This document shows positions 2,933-9,681 of a stretch of 64,000 bases of DNA, piece after piece. The stretch lies in the sequence record MN871444.1, one strand, 5' to 3'. The translations under genes and the position numbers were made by a program. Below the pieces are notes generated by a model. The model had not been told where the DNA came from. It ran no database searches and saw only the letters and a program-made list of their open reading frames with translations. Numbering within the stretch: position 1 is the stretch's first letter; each line of letters begins with the position of its first letter.

Positions 2933-5110
2933 ATGGCTGGATCAAAATTATTACGTATCCCTACTCACGTTAAGCGCACTAACGTTTCTCTCGAAGAACG
3001 CGAGCCCGCTGCTGAACGTGACCCGGATATTGTTGACCTGTCTCAAACGCCTGATGATGTTAATCCTGATGATGCAGGCACCACTGCGGCTGCTTCTTCA
3101 GAGGCGACATCTCAAAGCAGCGACGTAGCGAGTGATGCTGACGTCACTGAGACCGACACTGACGCGGGTGTTGCGTCTACAGAAGCTACGGGTGATGTTG
3201 CTACCGGGGCAGAACCCGATGCCGCCGCCTCCGCAGATGCGGATGCTGCCAGTGCAGACCAGACCCAAACCGACGAATCTGATGCCGTTGGCGGTGATGA
3301 AGCCACTTCTGCGGCTGCCGATGTTGGTGCAACCACCTCTGCCGAAGCAACACCTCCGGCCGATGATAGTACGGTAGATAGCGGAAATGATGCTGCCAAC
3401 GCTGACCTGGATAACCAGGGTGACATTACTCCCCCTGAAGAAGCTCAATCCACCGACTCGGATCTTGGCGGTGATACCTCAACCGATGTTGGTGCTGCCG
3501 ACCTGGGTGCGGTAGCGGATGGTGATACCTCCGCGGCTACCGACACTGGTACTGGGGAAATGGACTCAAGCACCGATGCAAGCGCGACGGCTGCTACTGA
3601 GCCGTCGACTCCTGTTGAAGAAGCTAACCCGGTTGAAAATCCGGCGGATGATATTCCGGAAGAAGCGCTTACTTCAGCCTGGGTTCAAGGTGTAGCCGTG
3701 GATAACCACGATGACGTCACCGACCTCAAAGATGGCGAAGAAGAACTGGATATTTACCAACACAATGAAAATGAGCTTCATGATGCTGCGACCAGTTTGG
3801 AAGAACTGCGCAACTGTTGTGTTCCGGTCGCCGTTGTTACGCACACTGAAACCGATGACCTCAGTACTCCGGTACAAACCGAAATGGTTTCGGATATTAG
3901 CGACAAAGCAGTAGACCTGCTGACTTCTACGGCGAATCAGACACTTTCTCGCCTGGGTAGTCAATTAGATCTGCCGGCTGCTACTGAGTCGGTCGGTACT
4001 CCAGCTGAACGCCTTCAGATTACGCTGGAAGCCATTGATGGTAAACTCAAACAAATTTGGGAAGCCATCAAGAAAATGGCAATTGCCGCCTGGGAAGCGT
4101 TTGTTAACTTTGTTAAAGGCGTCTTTGACAAGGCACAGCGCATTCGTAATCAGGTGGCTGGTCTGCGTAAATTCGTCGCTCAGTTCAAAGGGGCTACGCC
4201 AGAAAATGCTGAGTTTGAAAATAATTCAGTATGGGCAAGCTGCTGCGTGGAACGGGCTGGCCACAAACCTGAATTTGATGCTGCGGAAGTATCGACCCTA
4301 TTTGAAACCTACGTCAGTGCAGCTAAACCGTACCTGCTGAACGCAAGTAAGGCGCTGGCACCAGGACTCGGTCTGGTGTTTGACCGCGTCGCGGCGATTG
4401 ACCCGGAAAAAGCCGAAACCCGACAGGCTATGTGGGATGCTTTCGCCAACCTGATGGGTCGCTATAGCAAGTCGGTTGTTATGGTGACTAAGATGGTTGG
4501 TGGCGACACTAAATTGGATGATTCCGATCTGGCTGGTTTCGGCCCAACCCCTGGGTTGATGTCGATTTATTCTAACGCGGGCCTTGGTGGCGGATACCTG
4601 GCCGTGGACATCATCGACTCCAGCGTCAAGGTAGATATTGCGGCACCAGCTTTCTGGAACCATGCGGCATCGCGATACGTCCGCGGTCACGTAGTCGTTC
4701 CAGAGAACGCTAAAGTGCCGACCCTGTCTGCTGACCAGATGGAAGCCATGTTGGATCAGATCGATGAGGCGATGGAAACCGTACTGGAATATCGCTCGAC
4801 ATTTAAAACGTTTGAGCAACAGTTGGCGAAAGGGCAGCAAGCCACTACGAAACTGGCCAGCAAAATTCCAGAAAATGCCTCCCGAAATGATGCAAACGTC
4901 GCTATCTTTGCTTCGATGAAACTGGTGCCTAAACTGACTGGGTTCAACCAGGCAGTCATTAATGGCCTGTACGTTCAATCCAGTGCGATGCTCCAATACA
5001 TCGTAGCATCCACCAAACAGTATTCGGCCAATGAAAGCGCTGTCGATTCAACAGCGCAGACAGTAGCCGATGAAGGGGCGGCTAAATTACCGGCTCCTAA
5101 AGCAGCATAA
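2933..5110 (+). CDS. Internal head protein with long acidic N-terminal propeptide (gp93-family-like)
   Basis: About 300 aa D/A/T-rich N-terminus with VSLEE and TSLEE, then ITLE|AIDGKLKQIWEAIKK, nearly identical to the motif in 1433..2860. Confidence 0.75.
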   Translation: MAGSKLLRIPTHVKRTNVSLEEREPAAERDPDIVDLSQTPDDVNPDDAGTTAAASSEATSQSSDVASDADVTETDTDAGVASTEATGDVATGAEPDAAASADADAASADQTQTDESDAVGGDEATSAAADVGATTSAEATPPADDSTVDSGNDAANADLDNQGDITPPEEAQSTDSDLGGDTSTDVGAADLGAVADGDTSAATDTGTGEMDSSTDASATAATEPSTPVEEANPVENPADDIPEEALTSAWVQGVAVDNHDDVTDLKDGEEELDIYQHNENELHDAATSLEELRNCCVPVAVVTHTETDDLSTPVQTEMVSDISDKAVDLLTSTANQTLSRLGSQLDLPAATESVGTPAERLQITLEAIDGKLKQIWEAIKKMAIAAWEAFVNFVKGVFDKAQRIRNQVAGLRKFVAQFKGATPENAEFENNSVWASCCVERAGHKPEFDAAEVSTLFETYVSAAKPYLLNASKALAPGLGLVFDRVAAIDPEKAETRQAMWDAFANLMGRYSKSVVMVTKMVGGDTKLDDSDLAGFGPTPGLMSIYSNAGLGGGYLAVDIIDSSVKVDIAAPAFWNHAASRYVRGHVVVPENAKVPTLSADQMEAMLDQIDEAMETVLEYRSTFKTFEQQLAKGQQATTKLASKIPENASRNDANVAIFASMKLVPKLTGFNQAVINGLYVQSSAMLQYIVASTKQYSANESAVDSTAQTVADEGAAKLPAPKAA

Positions 5111-6485: not shown

Positions 6486-6490
6486 CGTTG

Positions 6491-6517
6491 AGGGAGGCTT
6501 CGGCCTCCCTTTTATGC
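6491..6517 (+). terminator. Rho-independent terminator
   Basis: AGGGAGGC-TTCG-GCCTCCCT followed by TTTATGC. Confidence 0.85.
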
Positions 6518-6579
6518 TTAATATAAAAAAATACTATTCAAGATTACAATTTGAGTACACTTGGGGATGAAACATAAAA

Positions 6580-6775
6580 GACCTAAGGAAACGTTCCGTG
6601 CGAAGCACTCCACGTTACTGTTACTAATAAAAAGATAAGATAAATATATTTAATAGGAAAGAAAAAAGATCTTAGATTTGGGGGTTTGGGGGAGGGGTAG
6701 GAGGAGCAAAGCTCCTCCGTAGGGGAGGACCATAAAAACATAATTGTACGGGGAAGGGTTTATCTCCCTTCCCAA
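6580..6775. other. Structured non-coding region (mini-hairpin, purine-rich tract, four G-runs, two GC hairpins)
   Basis: GTGC-GAA-GCAC at 6598-6608. G-runs at 6680-84, 6688-92, 6694-97 and 6722-25. Hairpins at 6700-6718 and 6751-6773. Confidence 0.6.
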
Positions 6776-6839
6776 ATATGCTGACCAATCGCAATTCAGA
6801 ATTATCGTGTGTTTAACTCCACTAAAAGGTATTACTATT

Positions 6840-7277
6840 ATGAAACATGCTATTGTCCCTACACAAGCACCTAAAATCAGTATGATGGTAGGTTCCCAAT
6901 CTTTGGAGACTGGCGTCAAACTCACTGTAGAGGGTAGTGGTCGTATTGATTTCTCACCCGTAGTATCCCAGGTGCCTACATCGAATAATGGATTGCAATC
7001 GACGGCGTATTGGTCAGAATGCGAACCATCGACCTACTTCCTTAGTTTGGGTCAATACTCATGTACGCCATGTGGGATCATTAAATTCCATGAGGGGAAT
7101 ATTGACGAACCTAACGGCACGACGGTGGAATCCTTACTTCACGTTGTTGAACATCGTCTCGAGCACCATCAAACCGGCGAGTACCCCTGTAAGGAAAATG
7201 CAGCAGCGTTGAGTGCTGTACGGGCCGCTTTAGTCGCATTACATCATCGCAGTGAAAAACAAGGAAAAGTATCATGA
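6840..7277 (+). CDS. tad1: Tad1-like (Acb2/Tad1 hairpin family) anti-defence signal-sponge protein
   Basis: The C-half IKFHEG...NGTTVESLLHVVEHRLEHHQTGEYPCKENAAALSAVRAAL matches the recalled Tad1 pattern IKFQxG...xGxxxxxLLxIVxxRLxxFQxGxFxxRENAxALxxVEEAL. ATG 6840 (AAAAGGT RBS) is preferred over 6744. Confidence 0.65.
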   Translation: MKHAIVPTQAPKISMMVGSQSLETGVKLTVEGSGRIDFSPVVSQVPTSNNGLQSTAYWSECEPSTYFLSLGQYSCTPCGIIKFHEGNIDEPNGTTVESLLHVVEHRLEHHQTGEYPCKENAAALSAVRAALVALHHRSEKQGKVS

Positions 7278-8137
7278 TTCAAGTTGTATCCGCATTTCCT
7301 GGCTGTGGGAAGAGTTGGTTTCATCGGCAATTTACTGATGTTCTGGATAGCGATTCCAGTGGTTTTGATAAATCAGCATTCCCGCAAAACTATATCTGCC
7401 ATATTCGCAATACGATGGTCCAAGATAAATGCATCTTCGTAAGCAGTCATGGGATGGTCAGAGCAGCTATGATTGACTCCGGGATAGAATATATCCTGGT
7501 TTATCCTAGCCATGACATCAAGGACGAATTTCTTGACCGATATCGTAAACGTGGCAGCGAACCCCAATTCATTGAACTGCTGGACAAAAACTGGGATGCG
7601 TGGATTGGCGAATGTCAGGGGCAGCAAGGATGTGTGCATGTCGTACTGCAATCGGGAGAGTACCTCGCAGACGTCATCGAATATGACCCGCTCTACCGCC
7701 GGTTTACCGTTAAAGACGGGGCTACTACGTTTACCCCTCAACCACACAAACACAAAACGGAATACGTTGCTGTAGATTTTGATGGCACCATCGTCACTAA
7801 CGAATGGCCTGAGGTAGGTAAAGATACGGGCGCAATTGCGGTGCTGCGGGAACTACTCAGTGCGGGATGTAAGTTAATCCTACATACGGTCAGGGAAGGG
7901 AAGGAGCTTAATGAGGCGCTGGCGTATTGCGCAAAACATGGAATCGATTTCATTGGTGTCAATGAAAATCGTGAGTTTCCTCCTGGTGGAACCGTCACAG
8001 ATAAACCGTATGCCGACGTATATATCGATGATCGTGCGATGGGTTGCCCGCTTACCCACAACCCACTCATACATAAAGAACCGTATGTAGATTGGCTTGC
8101 GATTAGAAAACAACTGGAGAAACGAGGAGTATTATAA
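7274..8137 (+). CDS. P-loop nucleotide-kinase-like / HAD-phosphatase fusion
   Basis: N-terminal Walker A AFPGCGKS. C-terminal HAD motif I VDFDGT, motif II LHT, and KPYADVYIDDR (motifs III/IV). ATGA overlap with the upstream gene. Confidence 0.75.
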   Translation: MIQVVSAFPGCGKSWFHRQFTDVLDSDSSGFDKSAFPQNYICHIRNTMVQDKCIFVSSHGMVRAAMIDSGIEYILVYPSHDIKDEFLDRYRKRGSEPQFIELLDKNWDAWIGECQGQQGCVHVVLQSGEYLADVIEYDPLYRRFTVKDGATTFTPQPHKHKTEYVAVDFDGTIVTNEWPEVGKDTGAIAVLRELLSAGCKLILHTVREGKELNEALAYCAKHGIDFIGVNENREFPPGGTVTDKPYADVYIDDRAMGCPLTHNPLIHKEPYVDWLAIRKQLEKRGVL

Positions 8138-9681
8138 TGCCGAGTATCGGACTTAACCTCCCTGAGGGGTATGAGTTAATCTCACGCCCTGTTGCTCAGG
8201 GTATTGCCCAGCGGGTAATATCACACTTAGGGATTCAGGATAAAGTCAGCATCCTGTTCCCAGGCGATGCTGAGGTAGCGGCGCAAGCCGGCAGTACATT
8301 GGGAGAACAAAAGGAAGGGGGTCCGAATACACGCTTTGCCAGTACTCAAAGACTTCAGGTCAGTATGAATGAACAGGTTCTGGAGGGAGAGGTATTAGCT
8401 ACCCCTACTTGGCAAATAAACCACCCTCCCATTTTCTCAGACCCTAAATTGGGCATCACTATGAAGCCCATTTACCATCTCGTGGAAGGGGTATTATCTT
8501 TCACTTATCGTGCAGCCGACCAAACAAGTGCCGAACAGTGGAAGAATAGATTGCTGCGGTACATTTCCCAAAACCGCGCAGAAATGTATCACGAGATTAT
8601 TTATGCGTACGCCTTACCGGGACAGTTTATTACTATCTTGGCAGAAATTCACAAGCTGCGTGAAACGGTAGCCCCATATGGGGATACGGTCATTGATTAC
8701 CTGCGCAACCATTTCAGTGGCCGCGTAGATGTTAAAACCAACATGGCTGGGAAGGGTAGTATTTTTGCGGTCGACGAAATCCAAAAAGGGGTTATCGGGT
8801 GGTTTGATTGGACCATCCCACCAACTCCAGAAAAAACCAGCGAAGAAAGTACCTATACCGCGACCTTTGAATTCCATTACCAATATCAGCAGGTTACTGG
8901 GGTTCATCTGAAATATCCGATTATCGTACACCAACAGCTGTTGCCTAGTAATCTGCGGCCGCTGAATTTATCTTACGAACTTAATCGCAGTTTACCCACC
9001 TATATGTCGTTGGCTAAACAAGAGTATCAGGCGGTTAAGAAAGAAACAGACGGTTATTACGCGACCCAGGAAGGGATTCGTTACCCCGACTTTGATGAGT
9101 GGGCACCTGATCATGTAATCGCCAATCAAATCCCAGTGTTGACTGTAATGTTAACAATCTCTGCGGATGACCCGAGATTTCTCTTAAACATTAAAGAATT
9201 GTCTCATTGGAATTTTAACCCTGATATTCTCGAATTTATGTTGGCTGAACCTAAATGGGTTACGCTGACTAAATTTACTCCAGTTTTAATCACGTTGTAT
9301 TGTGATGGCGATAAATGCGATGACCAGATAGTGCAGATGGATTCTTCTGGCGACGTGCGCACAACCATTGATTTGGACTTAAGACGACAATATCATGTTG
9401 TCATCAGCGCAATGTCGGATCTATCACAATTGAACAAAAACAATACCGATCTGTTGCGCCAGTATCCTAAAGCCGCCATGGTAGTGCTATACGCACTGGA
9501 ACCACGTTTGGAATCCTGGGGTAAATTACCCGAAGTACTGGGTGATAAACTGGTATCGCGTGTAGGGTGGTTAGAGGCGATTAATGTTATTAAAACGACC
9601 TCCCCTATTTTCCGCACGGCAAAATACTACGCGCGTTTTACGGTTGGGTCTTATATCCTGGCTACAGCGGAGAAAAAATAA
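8137..9681 (+). CDS. phiKZ-like virion structural protein (tail/baseplate region)
   Basis: 514 aa, first gene of the conserved block leading to the hub-like gene. TAATG coupling. Assignment by synteny. Confidence 0.55.
   Translation: MPSIGLNLPEGYELISRPVAQGIAQRVISHLGIQDKVSILFPGDAEVAAQAGSTLGEQKEGGPNTRFASTQRLQVSMNEQVLEGEVLATPTWQINHPPIFSDPKLGITMKPIYHLVEGVLSFTYRAADQTSAEQWKNRLLRYISQNRAEMYHEIIYAYALPGQFITILAEIHKLRETVAPYGDTVIDYLRNHFSGRVDVKTNMAGKGSIFAVDEIQKGVIGWFDWTIPPTPEKTSEESTYTATFEFHYQYQQVTGVHLKYPIIVHQQLLPSNLRPLNLSYELNRSLPTYMSLAKQEYQAVKKETDGYYATQEGIRYPDFDEWAPDHVIANQIPVLTVMLTISADDPRFLLNIKELSHWNFNPDILEFMLAEPKWVTLTKFTPVLITLYCDGDKCDDQIVQMDSSGDVRTTIDLDLRRQYHVVISAMSDLSQLNKNNTDLLRQYPKAAMVVLYALEPRLESWGKLPEVLGDKLVSRVGWLEAINVIKTTSPIFRTAKYYARFTVGSYILATAEKK

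Follow-up and report, generated by a model that had tools for sequence, protein, structure and literature searches.

A Tad1-family gene overlaps a kinase-HAD fusion gene at the head of a structural operon in a jumbo phage of the genus Eowynvirus

Two adjoining genes of Serratia phage KpGz_1, called gene A and gene B here, overlap by four bases, so that the stop codon of the first and the start codon of the second share the sequence ATGA at positions 7274-7277. Gene A (6840-7277, plus strand, 145 aa) resembles Tad1, a family of sponges for nucleotide immune signals. Gene B (7274-8137, plus strand, 287 aa) encodes a P-loop kinase-like half followed by a phosphatase of the HAD type. Are these two genes parts of one mechanism, or two genes that lie next to each other? 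The DNA analyzed (the window) comprises 64,000 nucleotides of record MN871444.1 and corresponds to the start of the 269-kb genome of KpGz_1, whose recorded host is Klebsiella pneumoniae. Window bases 6500-8500 were 87% identical to those of two relatives, Klebsiella phage vB_KvM-Eowyn (Eowyn, the type of the genus Eowynvirus) and KpHz_2. An earlier interpretation made from the letters alone (the sequence-only reading) had proposed a two-part anti-signalling module. The features that it described were confirmed, namely, the overlap at 7274-7277, which is kept in all relatives, the Tad1-like nature of the first gene, and the intact P-loop (GCGKS) and HAD motifs of the second. However, the module itself was not supported by the distribution of the two genes, which were found adjacent within a single genus only. 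The reading that we prefer, with a probability of about 55%, is that two separate accessory genes head a late structural operon and do not make up one mechanism.

A Tad1-family protein with a non-canonical pocket

The family of gene A was examined at the levels of sequence, profile, and predicted structure. Its single sequence matched phiKZ gp184 (PDB 8y6v, chain I; E value of 6.6e-5) and several Tad1 crystal structures (E value of about 4e-4). A profile made from five close relatives detected five Tad1 sequences in the PDB, with E values of 1.5e-6 to 3.2e-5, as well as phiKZ gp184 (4.3e-5). When the profile was searched against 1.84 billion representative proteins, 1085 relatives were retrieved at an E value of <=0.001, all of them over residues ~66-141. 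Gene A also matched phrog_2428 (E value of 5e-13), and its close relatives gave weak matches to Pfam Acb2_Tad1_hairpin; gene A itself had no NCBIfam match and no significant Pfam family. The AlphaFold model, computed for a monomer, shows the Tad1 fold, in which two long helices at the C-terminal end come after a beta-sheet on the N-terminal side. The strands lie within residues 54-83 and the helices at 96-112 and 118-140, with a predicted local distance difference test score (pLDDT) of 86-95 over the helices. The top 20 matches of this model in the PDB were all Tad1 structures (E values of 3e-5 to 8e-4; target template modeling [TM] scores of 0.59-0.72; 111-119 aligned columns), and the 21st had an E value of 0.39. 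Judged by its sequence and its predicted fold, gene A belongs to the Tad1 sponge family, far beyond chance. The gene is under purifying selection, with a ratio of nonsynonymous to synonymous substitution rates (dN/dS) of 0.09-0.17. Its product evolves five to eight times faster than that of gene B or of the downstream gp98 homologue, and a tblastn search against phage records returned four Eowynvirus records only, even at an E value of 5.

We then compared gene A with the Tad1 proteins whose ligand contacts have been described. In CbTad1, residues F82, N92, R109, and R113 contact both glyco-cyclic ADP-ribose (gcADPR) and cyclic GMP-AMP (cGAMP), R90 and T97 contact cyclic trinucleotides, and the C-terminal tail forms a lid over the ligand (Li et al. 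preprint). These positions were mapped to gene A through a HMMER profile alignment, and the share of each residue in a column was calculated from 114 family representatives. N92 and R109 were kept, as N120 and R137, and R90 and T97 were conservatively replaced by K118 and S125, respectively. The crystallized CbTad1 and CmTad1 proteins (PDB 7uav, 7uaw, 8smd, and 8kbb-8kbh) have the fold in common with gene A. Three features weigh against a sponge of the usual kind and make the pocket non-canonical. F82 is replaced by H110, at a position where 102 of the 114 representatives have F and 7 have H; R113 is replaced by Q141, where 111 of the 114 have R; and the tail past R137 is 8 residues long compared with a family median of 15, so that the lid is ~7 residues shorter than that of CbTad1 and CmTad1. 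Because the pocket is unlike that of the characterized Tad1 proteins, the range of ligands may differ. A further difference from CbTad1 and CmTad1 is an N-terminal extension of ~32 residues in gene A, to which we return below.

Two observations were made on other members of the family. About one-fifth of the Tad1-family representatives (P0148, P0127, P0090, P0128, and others) have 60-150 additional N-terminal residues, and the N-terminal part of P0148 holds a crAss001_48-related domain; joining a sponge domain to differing N-terminal parts may be a recurrent design. The region of the gene A profile that holds the beta-strands (~61-107) was matched by 12 separate stretches of P0068 (1301 aa) and by 8 of P0092 (756 aa), both of them long proteins. 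They may be repeat proteins built from this beta-strand element, or the matches may be an artefact of composition.

The kinase-HAD fusion encoded by gene B

The N-terminal, kinase-like half of gene B (residues 1-140; 7274-7693) carries a Walker A loop, G10-C-G-K13-S14, and residues 2-137 matched phrog_4182 (E value of 5e-55). Across 34 kinase-domain sequences, G12, K13, D25 and D27 (just past strand 2), H59, R63, R89, and R93 (helix-loop) were invariant. Residues 1-150 were modelled with a pLDDT of >86. In addition to the Walker A loop, the other features that define the P-loop kinase fold class were all found, namely, a parallel sheet of five strands, lid arginines, and an acidic residue past strand 2. 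In a Foldseek search of this half against the PDB, guanylate kinase was the best match, accompanied by mammalian PNKP kinase, Fap7/hCINAP, shikimate kinase, and the Pnkp kinase of Clostridium thermocellum; the probabilities were 0.99-1.0, and the E values were only 4e-4 and weaker. Among the BFVD matches, which bore the names "nucleotide kinase" and "guanylate kinase," the "nucleotide kinase" of Salmonella phage SA001 superposed with a target TM score of 0.94. In sequence searches, neither the Pfam kinase models nor the PDB gave a significant match to this half. According to its motifs and model, the N-terminal half of gene B is a P-loop phosphotransferase and falls into the nucleotide/polynucleotide kinase fold class.

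Domains of the phrog_4182 type were found in 254 phage records, mostly of large phages. Stand-alone proteins of this type, such as the "nucleotide kinase" of T5-like Epseptimavirus phages and g133 of phiR1-37, were 40-54% identical to gene B over residues 2-138 and share its Walker A lysine, D25/D27, H59, R63, R89, and R93, but lack the HAD domain. The gene for g133 in Yersinia phage phiR1-37 (L223:2468-2932; 42% identity) bears the annotation "phage structural protein" and stands among consecutive structural genes, a context that suggests that the kinase family can be a virion passenger. In other cases, the domain is fused to different partners. P0011 (395 aa, from a single 1353-bp metagenome contig) has a TIR_2 domain (residues 88-175; E value of 1e-10) followed by a kinase-like domain (residues 226-365; 45% identity), and this one short contig points to a possible link between the kinase family and TIR/nicotinamide adenine dinucleotide (NAD) chemistry. 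The kinase domain is fused to a KTSC domain in P0037 and to unassigned domains in phages PaBG, N1M2, and FLC9. In Pseudomonas phage PaBG, it forms the C-terminal half of gp151 (L222:2057-2935; 292 aa), whose gene adjoins that of a PD-(D/E)XK nuclease; two genes from gp151, gp149 (L222:3384-3749) is annotated as "putative RNA 2'-phosphotransferase," which Pfam did not confirm.

A linker (residues 141-163; 7694-7762) joins the kinase-like half to the HAD half (residues 164-287; 7763-8134). The latter contains all four HAD motifs, D168-F-D170-G-T172 (motif I), T205 (motif II), K244 (motif III), and D252-D253 (motif IV). Among 20 stand-alone HAD relatives, the motif I residues were invariant, and the motif III lysine and the first aspartate of motif IV were each present in 19. 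This half matched phrog_1238 (E value of 3e-32), and residues 165-257 aligned with BT0820 of Bacteroides (PDB 2obb; E value of 3.9e-13, or 2.9e-60 with the family profile). The NCBIfam model NF046079 ("BT0820 family HAD-type phosphatase") gave an E value of 2.9e-24 with gene B and a score of 86 bits against a cut-off of 165; the HAD half is therefore a relative of BT0820 and not an equivalog. BT0820 of Bacteroides thetaiotaomicron has the four HAD motifs in common with gene B but is a stand-alone protein of ~140 aa, whereas the HAD of gene B is fused behind a kinase. A literature search on BT0820 found nothing. The HAD half is small and capless; capless HADs usually act on macromolecular substrates or have caps supplied by an oligomer. 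The model of this half, with 3 sequences in the alignment there, was of low confidence and was left unused. The homologue of gene B in Eowyn, gp124 (L001:8772-9635), carries the PHROGs label "phosphoheptose isomerase." We found no evidence here for an isomerase, and the PHROG label is the probable source of the name.

The order of the two domains is that of T4 Pnkp (pseT), in which a P-loop kinase comes first and a DxDxT HAD phosphatase second on one chain. Gene B has the same layout, an N-terminal P-loop kinase and a C-terminal DxDxT phosphatase on a single chain of ~290-300 aa. The PseT-type architecture noted in the sequence-only reading was therefore borne out as a domain order but not as a homology. 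Neither the single sequence nor a profile of either domain found a solved Pnkp chain at an E value of <=10, and neither a PNKP model nor any other Pfam family was significant for gene B. The Pfam model HAD_PNKP appeared below threshold in 5 of 21 HAD-domain relatives, not in gene B itself. The kinase fold was no closer to PNKP kinases than to GMP kinase, Fap7, and shikimate kinase. Instead of the Pnkp families, the HAD half belongs with BT0820 and the kinase half with phrog_4182. We therefore rejected membership of gene B in the Pnkp family, since the sequence and profile searches found no homology and the fold search returned generic P-loop kinases, with T4 Pnkp not among them.

As the Pnkp domain order occurs without detectable homology, we read gene B as a convergent fusion; by its sequence, its layout appears convergent with that of Pnkp at best. 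Such fusions were also found elsewhere. In P0062-P0066 (284-293 aa), a different P-loop kinase, with weak Pfam DNMK and guanylate-kinase matches, precedes a BT0820-type HAD. When the kinase-HAD family was compared with these DNMK-like-HAD fusions by hhalign, the HAD halves alone were aligned. The two fusions are therefore independent, and a kinase was joined to a BT0820-type HAD at least twice. The fusion in gene B is strongly constrained, with a dN/dS of 0.02-0.03 overall and 0.01-0.04 for both halves and the linker, a constraint equal to that of the structural gene gp98. Pnkp-like chemistry, with a 5' kinase and a 3' phosphatase acting on nucleic-acid ends or on nucleotides, would be its likeliest activity. 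Several results speak against this assignment in addition to the missing Pnkp homology. The kinase domain usually stands alone, without a phosphatase. No RNA ligase was found among the 336 annotated features of Eowyn, which is weak evidence because most of the genes are "hypothetical," and no tRNA is annotated in Eowyn or was detected in the window by ARAGORN.

Distribution of the pair and its place among virion genes

If the two genes formed a module, they might be expected to travel together. The pair and its ATGA overlap were kept in every relative found, i.e., in Eowyn, in KpHz_2, in two metagenome contigs whose gene A products were 78% identical to that of KpGz_1, and at the end of another contig (69% identity), which still shows the overlap and the first part of the kinase. 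This strict conservation is compatible with a functional coupling and thus tells against our preference for two separate genes; the relatives are too close for a test. However, Eowynvirus genomes are collinear across the region, and conservation of the pair within the genus therefore says little. We next surveyed contigs outside Eowynvirus in both directions, using profile hidden Markov models on six-frame open reading frames. None of 80 IMG/VR contigs with the kinase domain had a Tad1 gene or a BT0820-type HAD gene within 6 kb on each side. Conversely, among 131 viral contigs with a Tad1 gene, collected in part with a 41-nt degenerate pattern from near-invariant Tad1-family columns, none had either domain of gene B in the flanks, whose median length was 8.4 kb. 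The neighborhood survey that the sequence-only reading had suggested thus gave co-occurrence in all Eowynvirus relatives and at 0/80 and 0/131 loci elsewhere. Its remark that the pairing was not known to have been described still stands, since our literature search found no description of a Tad1 gene paired with a kinase-HAD gene. Functional coupling of gene A and gene B has no support beyond their adjacency.

The surroundings of the pair consist of virion genes. The products encoded by Eowyn include a nuclear shell protein and the tubulin PhuZ, as well as a head maturation protease and RNA polymerase in split subunits, and KpGz_1 is therefore a nucleus-forming, phiKZ-like jumbo phage. Upstream of gene A are two genes for internal head proteins of the phiKZ type (Pfam phiKZ_IP; E values of 4e-21 and 2e-13). 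The product of the first of them (2933-5110; 725 aa) has an N-terminal region of ~250 residues made almost wholly of D, A, T, S, E, and G, followed by phiKZ_IP. Downstream of gene B are homologues of phiKZ gp98 and gp99, the latter with Pfam head-tail joining domains. The gp98 homologue (8137-9681, plus strand) matched phrog_3289 (E value of 5e-115) and has homologues in 242 jumbo-phage records; that of phage Moabite is annotated as matching phiKZ gp98, a virion protein according to mass spectrometry. The pair therefore lies between the internal head protein genes and the gp98-gp101 block, and not, as had been proposed, between head and baseplate blocks. The same slot was examined in other phages. 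It holds unrelated genes in Goslar (gp052, L004:5625-6008; 127 aa) and in Moabite (gp299, L003:4836-5912; 358 aa), each preceded by a terminator, and a gene for a large virion protein in PA7. Goslar gp052 was considered as a Tad1 protein in the same slot and rejected, as it is not Tad1-like. In FLC9, the best non-Eowynvirus record for the gp98 protein, a kinase domain with 37% identity, including the linker, is fused to a non-HAD tail and encoded at an unrelated locus. The slot between the internal-head-protein genes and gp98 looks like a variable accessory position.

The last internal-head-protein gene is closed by a strong intrinsic terminator on the plus strand (6490-6511), with a 9-bp GC-rich stem, a tetraloop, and a T-run. 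Its stem varies between relatives in both arms, and the pairing is therefore preserved. This terminator marks the start of a new transcription unit, and the pair is the head of a structural operon. After the terminator, three genes coupled by overlaps run into the virion genes gp98 and gp99. The start of gene A is preceded at 9-11 nt by a ribosome site of the GAGG type, and the purine-rich ribosome site of each following start sits within the preceding gene. Since the stop of gene B and the start of the gp98 homologue share one base (TAATG, 8134-8138), the coupling extends further downstream. The overlap of gene A and gene B, which the sequence-only reading had taken to couple the two, is real but is no special sign. 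A simple gene call gave 46 same-strand junctions in the window. Of these, 5 were of the ATGA type, 2 were 1-nt overlaps, and 8 others overlapped or abutted within 10 nt, so that about one-third of the junctions are as tight and the arrangement is ordinary here. The G+C content of gene A and gene B, 0.46-0.47, is close to that of the genome (0.46). A thymidylate kinase gene, gp153 (L227:21250-21852), is embedded among the virion structural genes of Eowyn, so that a metabolic enzyme in a structural operon is nothing exceptional for this genome.

Between the terminator and gene A lies a conserved leader on the plus strand (6512-6825), recognized by its conservation in alignments and its hairpins. 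It is 314 nt long and ends 15 nt before the start of gene A, and it is non-coding, as the indels in its alignment are not multiples of three. Its identity to three relatives is 91, 78, and 76%, compared with 46-73% at third-codon positions of the flanking genes, and six runs, of 32, 29, 21, 18, 15, and 12 nt, do not vary among the four genomes. The leader contains a G-tract block (6679-6707) and two hairpins, one whose loop varies while its stem is invariant and one that shows compensatory changes; the z-score of its fold is modest (-2.0). No Rfam family matched it. Its blocks are unique in the window, exact-pattern scans of IMG/VR gave no match, and only Eowynvirus records matched in the phage collection. 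It may be a small RNA, or serve as a late promoter, a structured 5' leader, or both.

The presence of a sponge gene among head genes is explained more simply by what is known of phiKZ. Its gp184 is a Tad1 protein and, at the same time, a minor capsid protein at the inner capsid surface with prohead-protease sites; the N terminus is wedged in the capsid, and the C-terminal part freed by the protease is injected at the next infection (bioRxiv 10.1101/2025.11.23.690004; PMC11297242; PMC13282480). In the related giant phage SPN3US, the site after which the prohead protease cuts is A-X-E, and the N-terminal propeptides that it removes have 20-24 residues at the shortest (PMC10052503). Gene A resembles phiKZ gp184 in having a Tad1-type C-terminal domain and extra N-terminal residues, in lying among virion genes, and in belonging to a phiKZ-like nucleus-forming phage. 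It has 65 residues ahead of the near-invariant Y66, compared with a family median of 33. A cut past E31 would leave 34 residues before Y66 and would fit the length of a canonical Tad1, which divides gene A into an N-terminal extension (residues 1-31; 6840-6932) and a Tad1 core (residues 32-145; 6933-7274). E31 is invariant in five relatives, in which the two residues ahead of it are T-V, T-L, or S-V and the one behind it is glycine; a second S-L-E at residues 21-23 is not conserved. In addition, the homologue of gene A in Eowyn is annotated as "structural protein." By analogy with gp184, the product of gene A may therefore be a packaged, trimmed sponge.

Several points weigh against this analogy. 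The P3 position of the candidate cleavage site is T in gene A, rather than A, S, or G, and residues 1-36 were modelled at a pLDDT of <50. The two proteins also differ. Gp184 has 230 aa with a long N-terminal part that is seen in the capsid, whereas gene A has 145 aa and ~32 extra residues; gene A adjoins gp98, while the gp184-type Tad1 gene of the phiKZ-type phage PA7 lies elsewhere; and tblastn gave no match between gene A and gp184 even at an E value of 5. Packaging has been shown for gp184 and is a prediction for gene A.

One mechanism or two neighbouring genes

According to the explanation that we prefer, gene A would encode a sponge for gcADPR or cyclic-oligonucleotide immune signals that is a late product and enters the prohead by means of the ~31 extra residues at its N terminus, as in the case of gp184. 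The prohead protease would trim it after E31, and the core would be delivered with the DNA, so that the sponge would be present ahead of any phage gene expression. Gene B would add 5' phosphates and remove 3' phosphates on nucleic-acid ends or on nucleotides, its fusion being a convergent product of a phrog_4182 phage kinase and a BT0820-type HAD. The two genes would be adjacent because both occupy the variable slot that separates the genes for internal head proteins from the gp98 block, and their overlap would be ordinary operon packing.

One rival for the activity of gene B is a nucleotide-pool enzyme, i.e., a (deoxy)nucleoside monophosphate kinase combined with a nucleotidase, without any role in immunity; it could, for example, convert 3'-nucleotides from degraded host nucleic acid into 5'-nucleotides. 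Guanylate kinase is the best fold match in the PDB, the names in BFVD agree with it, and elsewhere a DNMK-like kinase is found in front of a HAD from this family. The genome also has a thymidine kinase, a thymidylate synthase, and the thymidylate kinase in the structural block. However, no Pfam model of a nucleoside monophosphate kinase was significant on any of the 34 family members, the would-be nucleoside monophosphate-binding segment is very short, and a kinase and a phosphatase working on the same nucleotides would be futile unless they were position-specific. We regard this role as a minority possibility, yet as a serious rival to Pnkp-like chemistry. In another arrangement, the two genes would form a co-selected anti-defence islet without common chemistry, in which gene A is the sponge and gene B repairs the RNA or tRNA ends that immune nucleases leave, in the way that T4 Pnkp counters PrrC. 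The size and the kinase-then-HAD order of gene B fit T4 Pnkp, PNKP-type kinases are among the fold matches, the usual macromolecular substrates of capless HADs would suit such a role, and anti-defence genes are often clustered. The absence of Pnkp homology, of tRNA genes, and of an annotated RNA ligase in the largely unannotated Eowyn genome argues against it, as does the constraint on gene B (dN/dS of 0.02), which is that of a structural gene and unlike that of typical fast-evolving counter-defence genes. This islet seems unlikely to us.

A shared mechanism would ask for more. The sponge would bind a signal made by a TIR or CD-NTase enzyme, and gene B would inactivate the signal or recycle its ADP-ribose or nucleotide parts. 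Adjacency with the ATGA overlap in all relatives fits such a scheme, and the altered pocket of gene A could suit a handover. The TIR fusion of P0011 offers a loose link to NAD/ADP-ribose chemistry but consists of one 1.35-kb contig, and the kinase homologue of PaBG lies two genes from the annotated RNA 2'-phosphotransferase that Pfam did not confirm. We consider the scheme quite improbable, given that the two genes do not co-occur beyond one genus (0/80 and 0/131), that gcADPR and cyclic oligonucleotides have no phosphomonoester for a HAD phosphatase, and that the two genes evolve at very unequal rates (dN/dS of 0.09-0.17 for gene A and 0.02-0.03 for gene B). To our knowledge, the enzymes that destroy these immune signals are phosphodiesterases and not kinase/HAD pairs. 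More improbable still is a complete counter-immunity cassette, delivered or expressed from one late transcript, in which a lid-less Tad1 variant with an altered pocket hands ADP-ribose-derived or 3'-phosphorylated signals to gene B for inactivation and the leader tunes the expression of both. If true, it would be the first relay of a sponge and an enzyme against nucleotide immune signalling.

With two separate accessory genes as the preferred explanation, the new elements are modest. They comprise the Tad1 variant of a Klebsiella chimallivirus, which is compact and has an altered pocket, the Pnkp-like fusion that we read as convergent, and the conserved leader. For annotation, the name "phosphoheptose isomerase" of the gene B homologue in Eowyn is unsupported, and the gene A homologue is labelled just "structural protein." Gene B would give a first functional handle on phrog_4182, a family with ~250 large-phage records, and would mean that the Pnkp-like kinase-then-HAD layout has arisen again from unrelated building blocks. 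Tad1 has been reported as the sole described anti-defence protein of jumbo phages (PMC13282480). Gene A would represent a second, compact form of this jumbo-phage sponge, in which two family-typical ligand contacts are changed, and provided that signals are still bound, Tad1 pockets would be known from a wider range of sequences.

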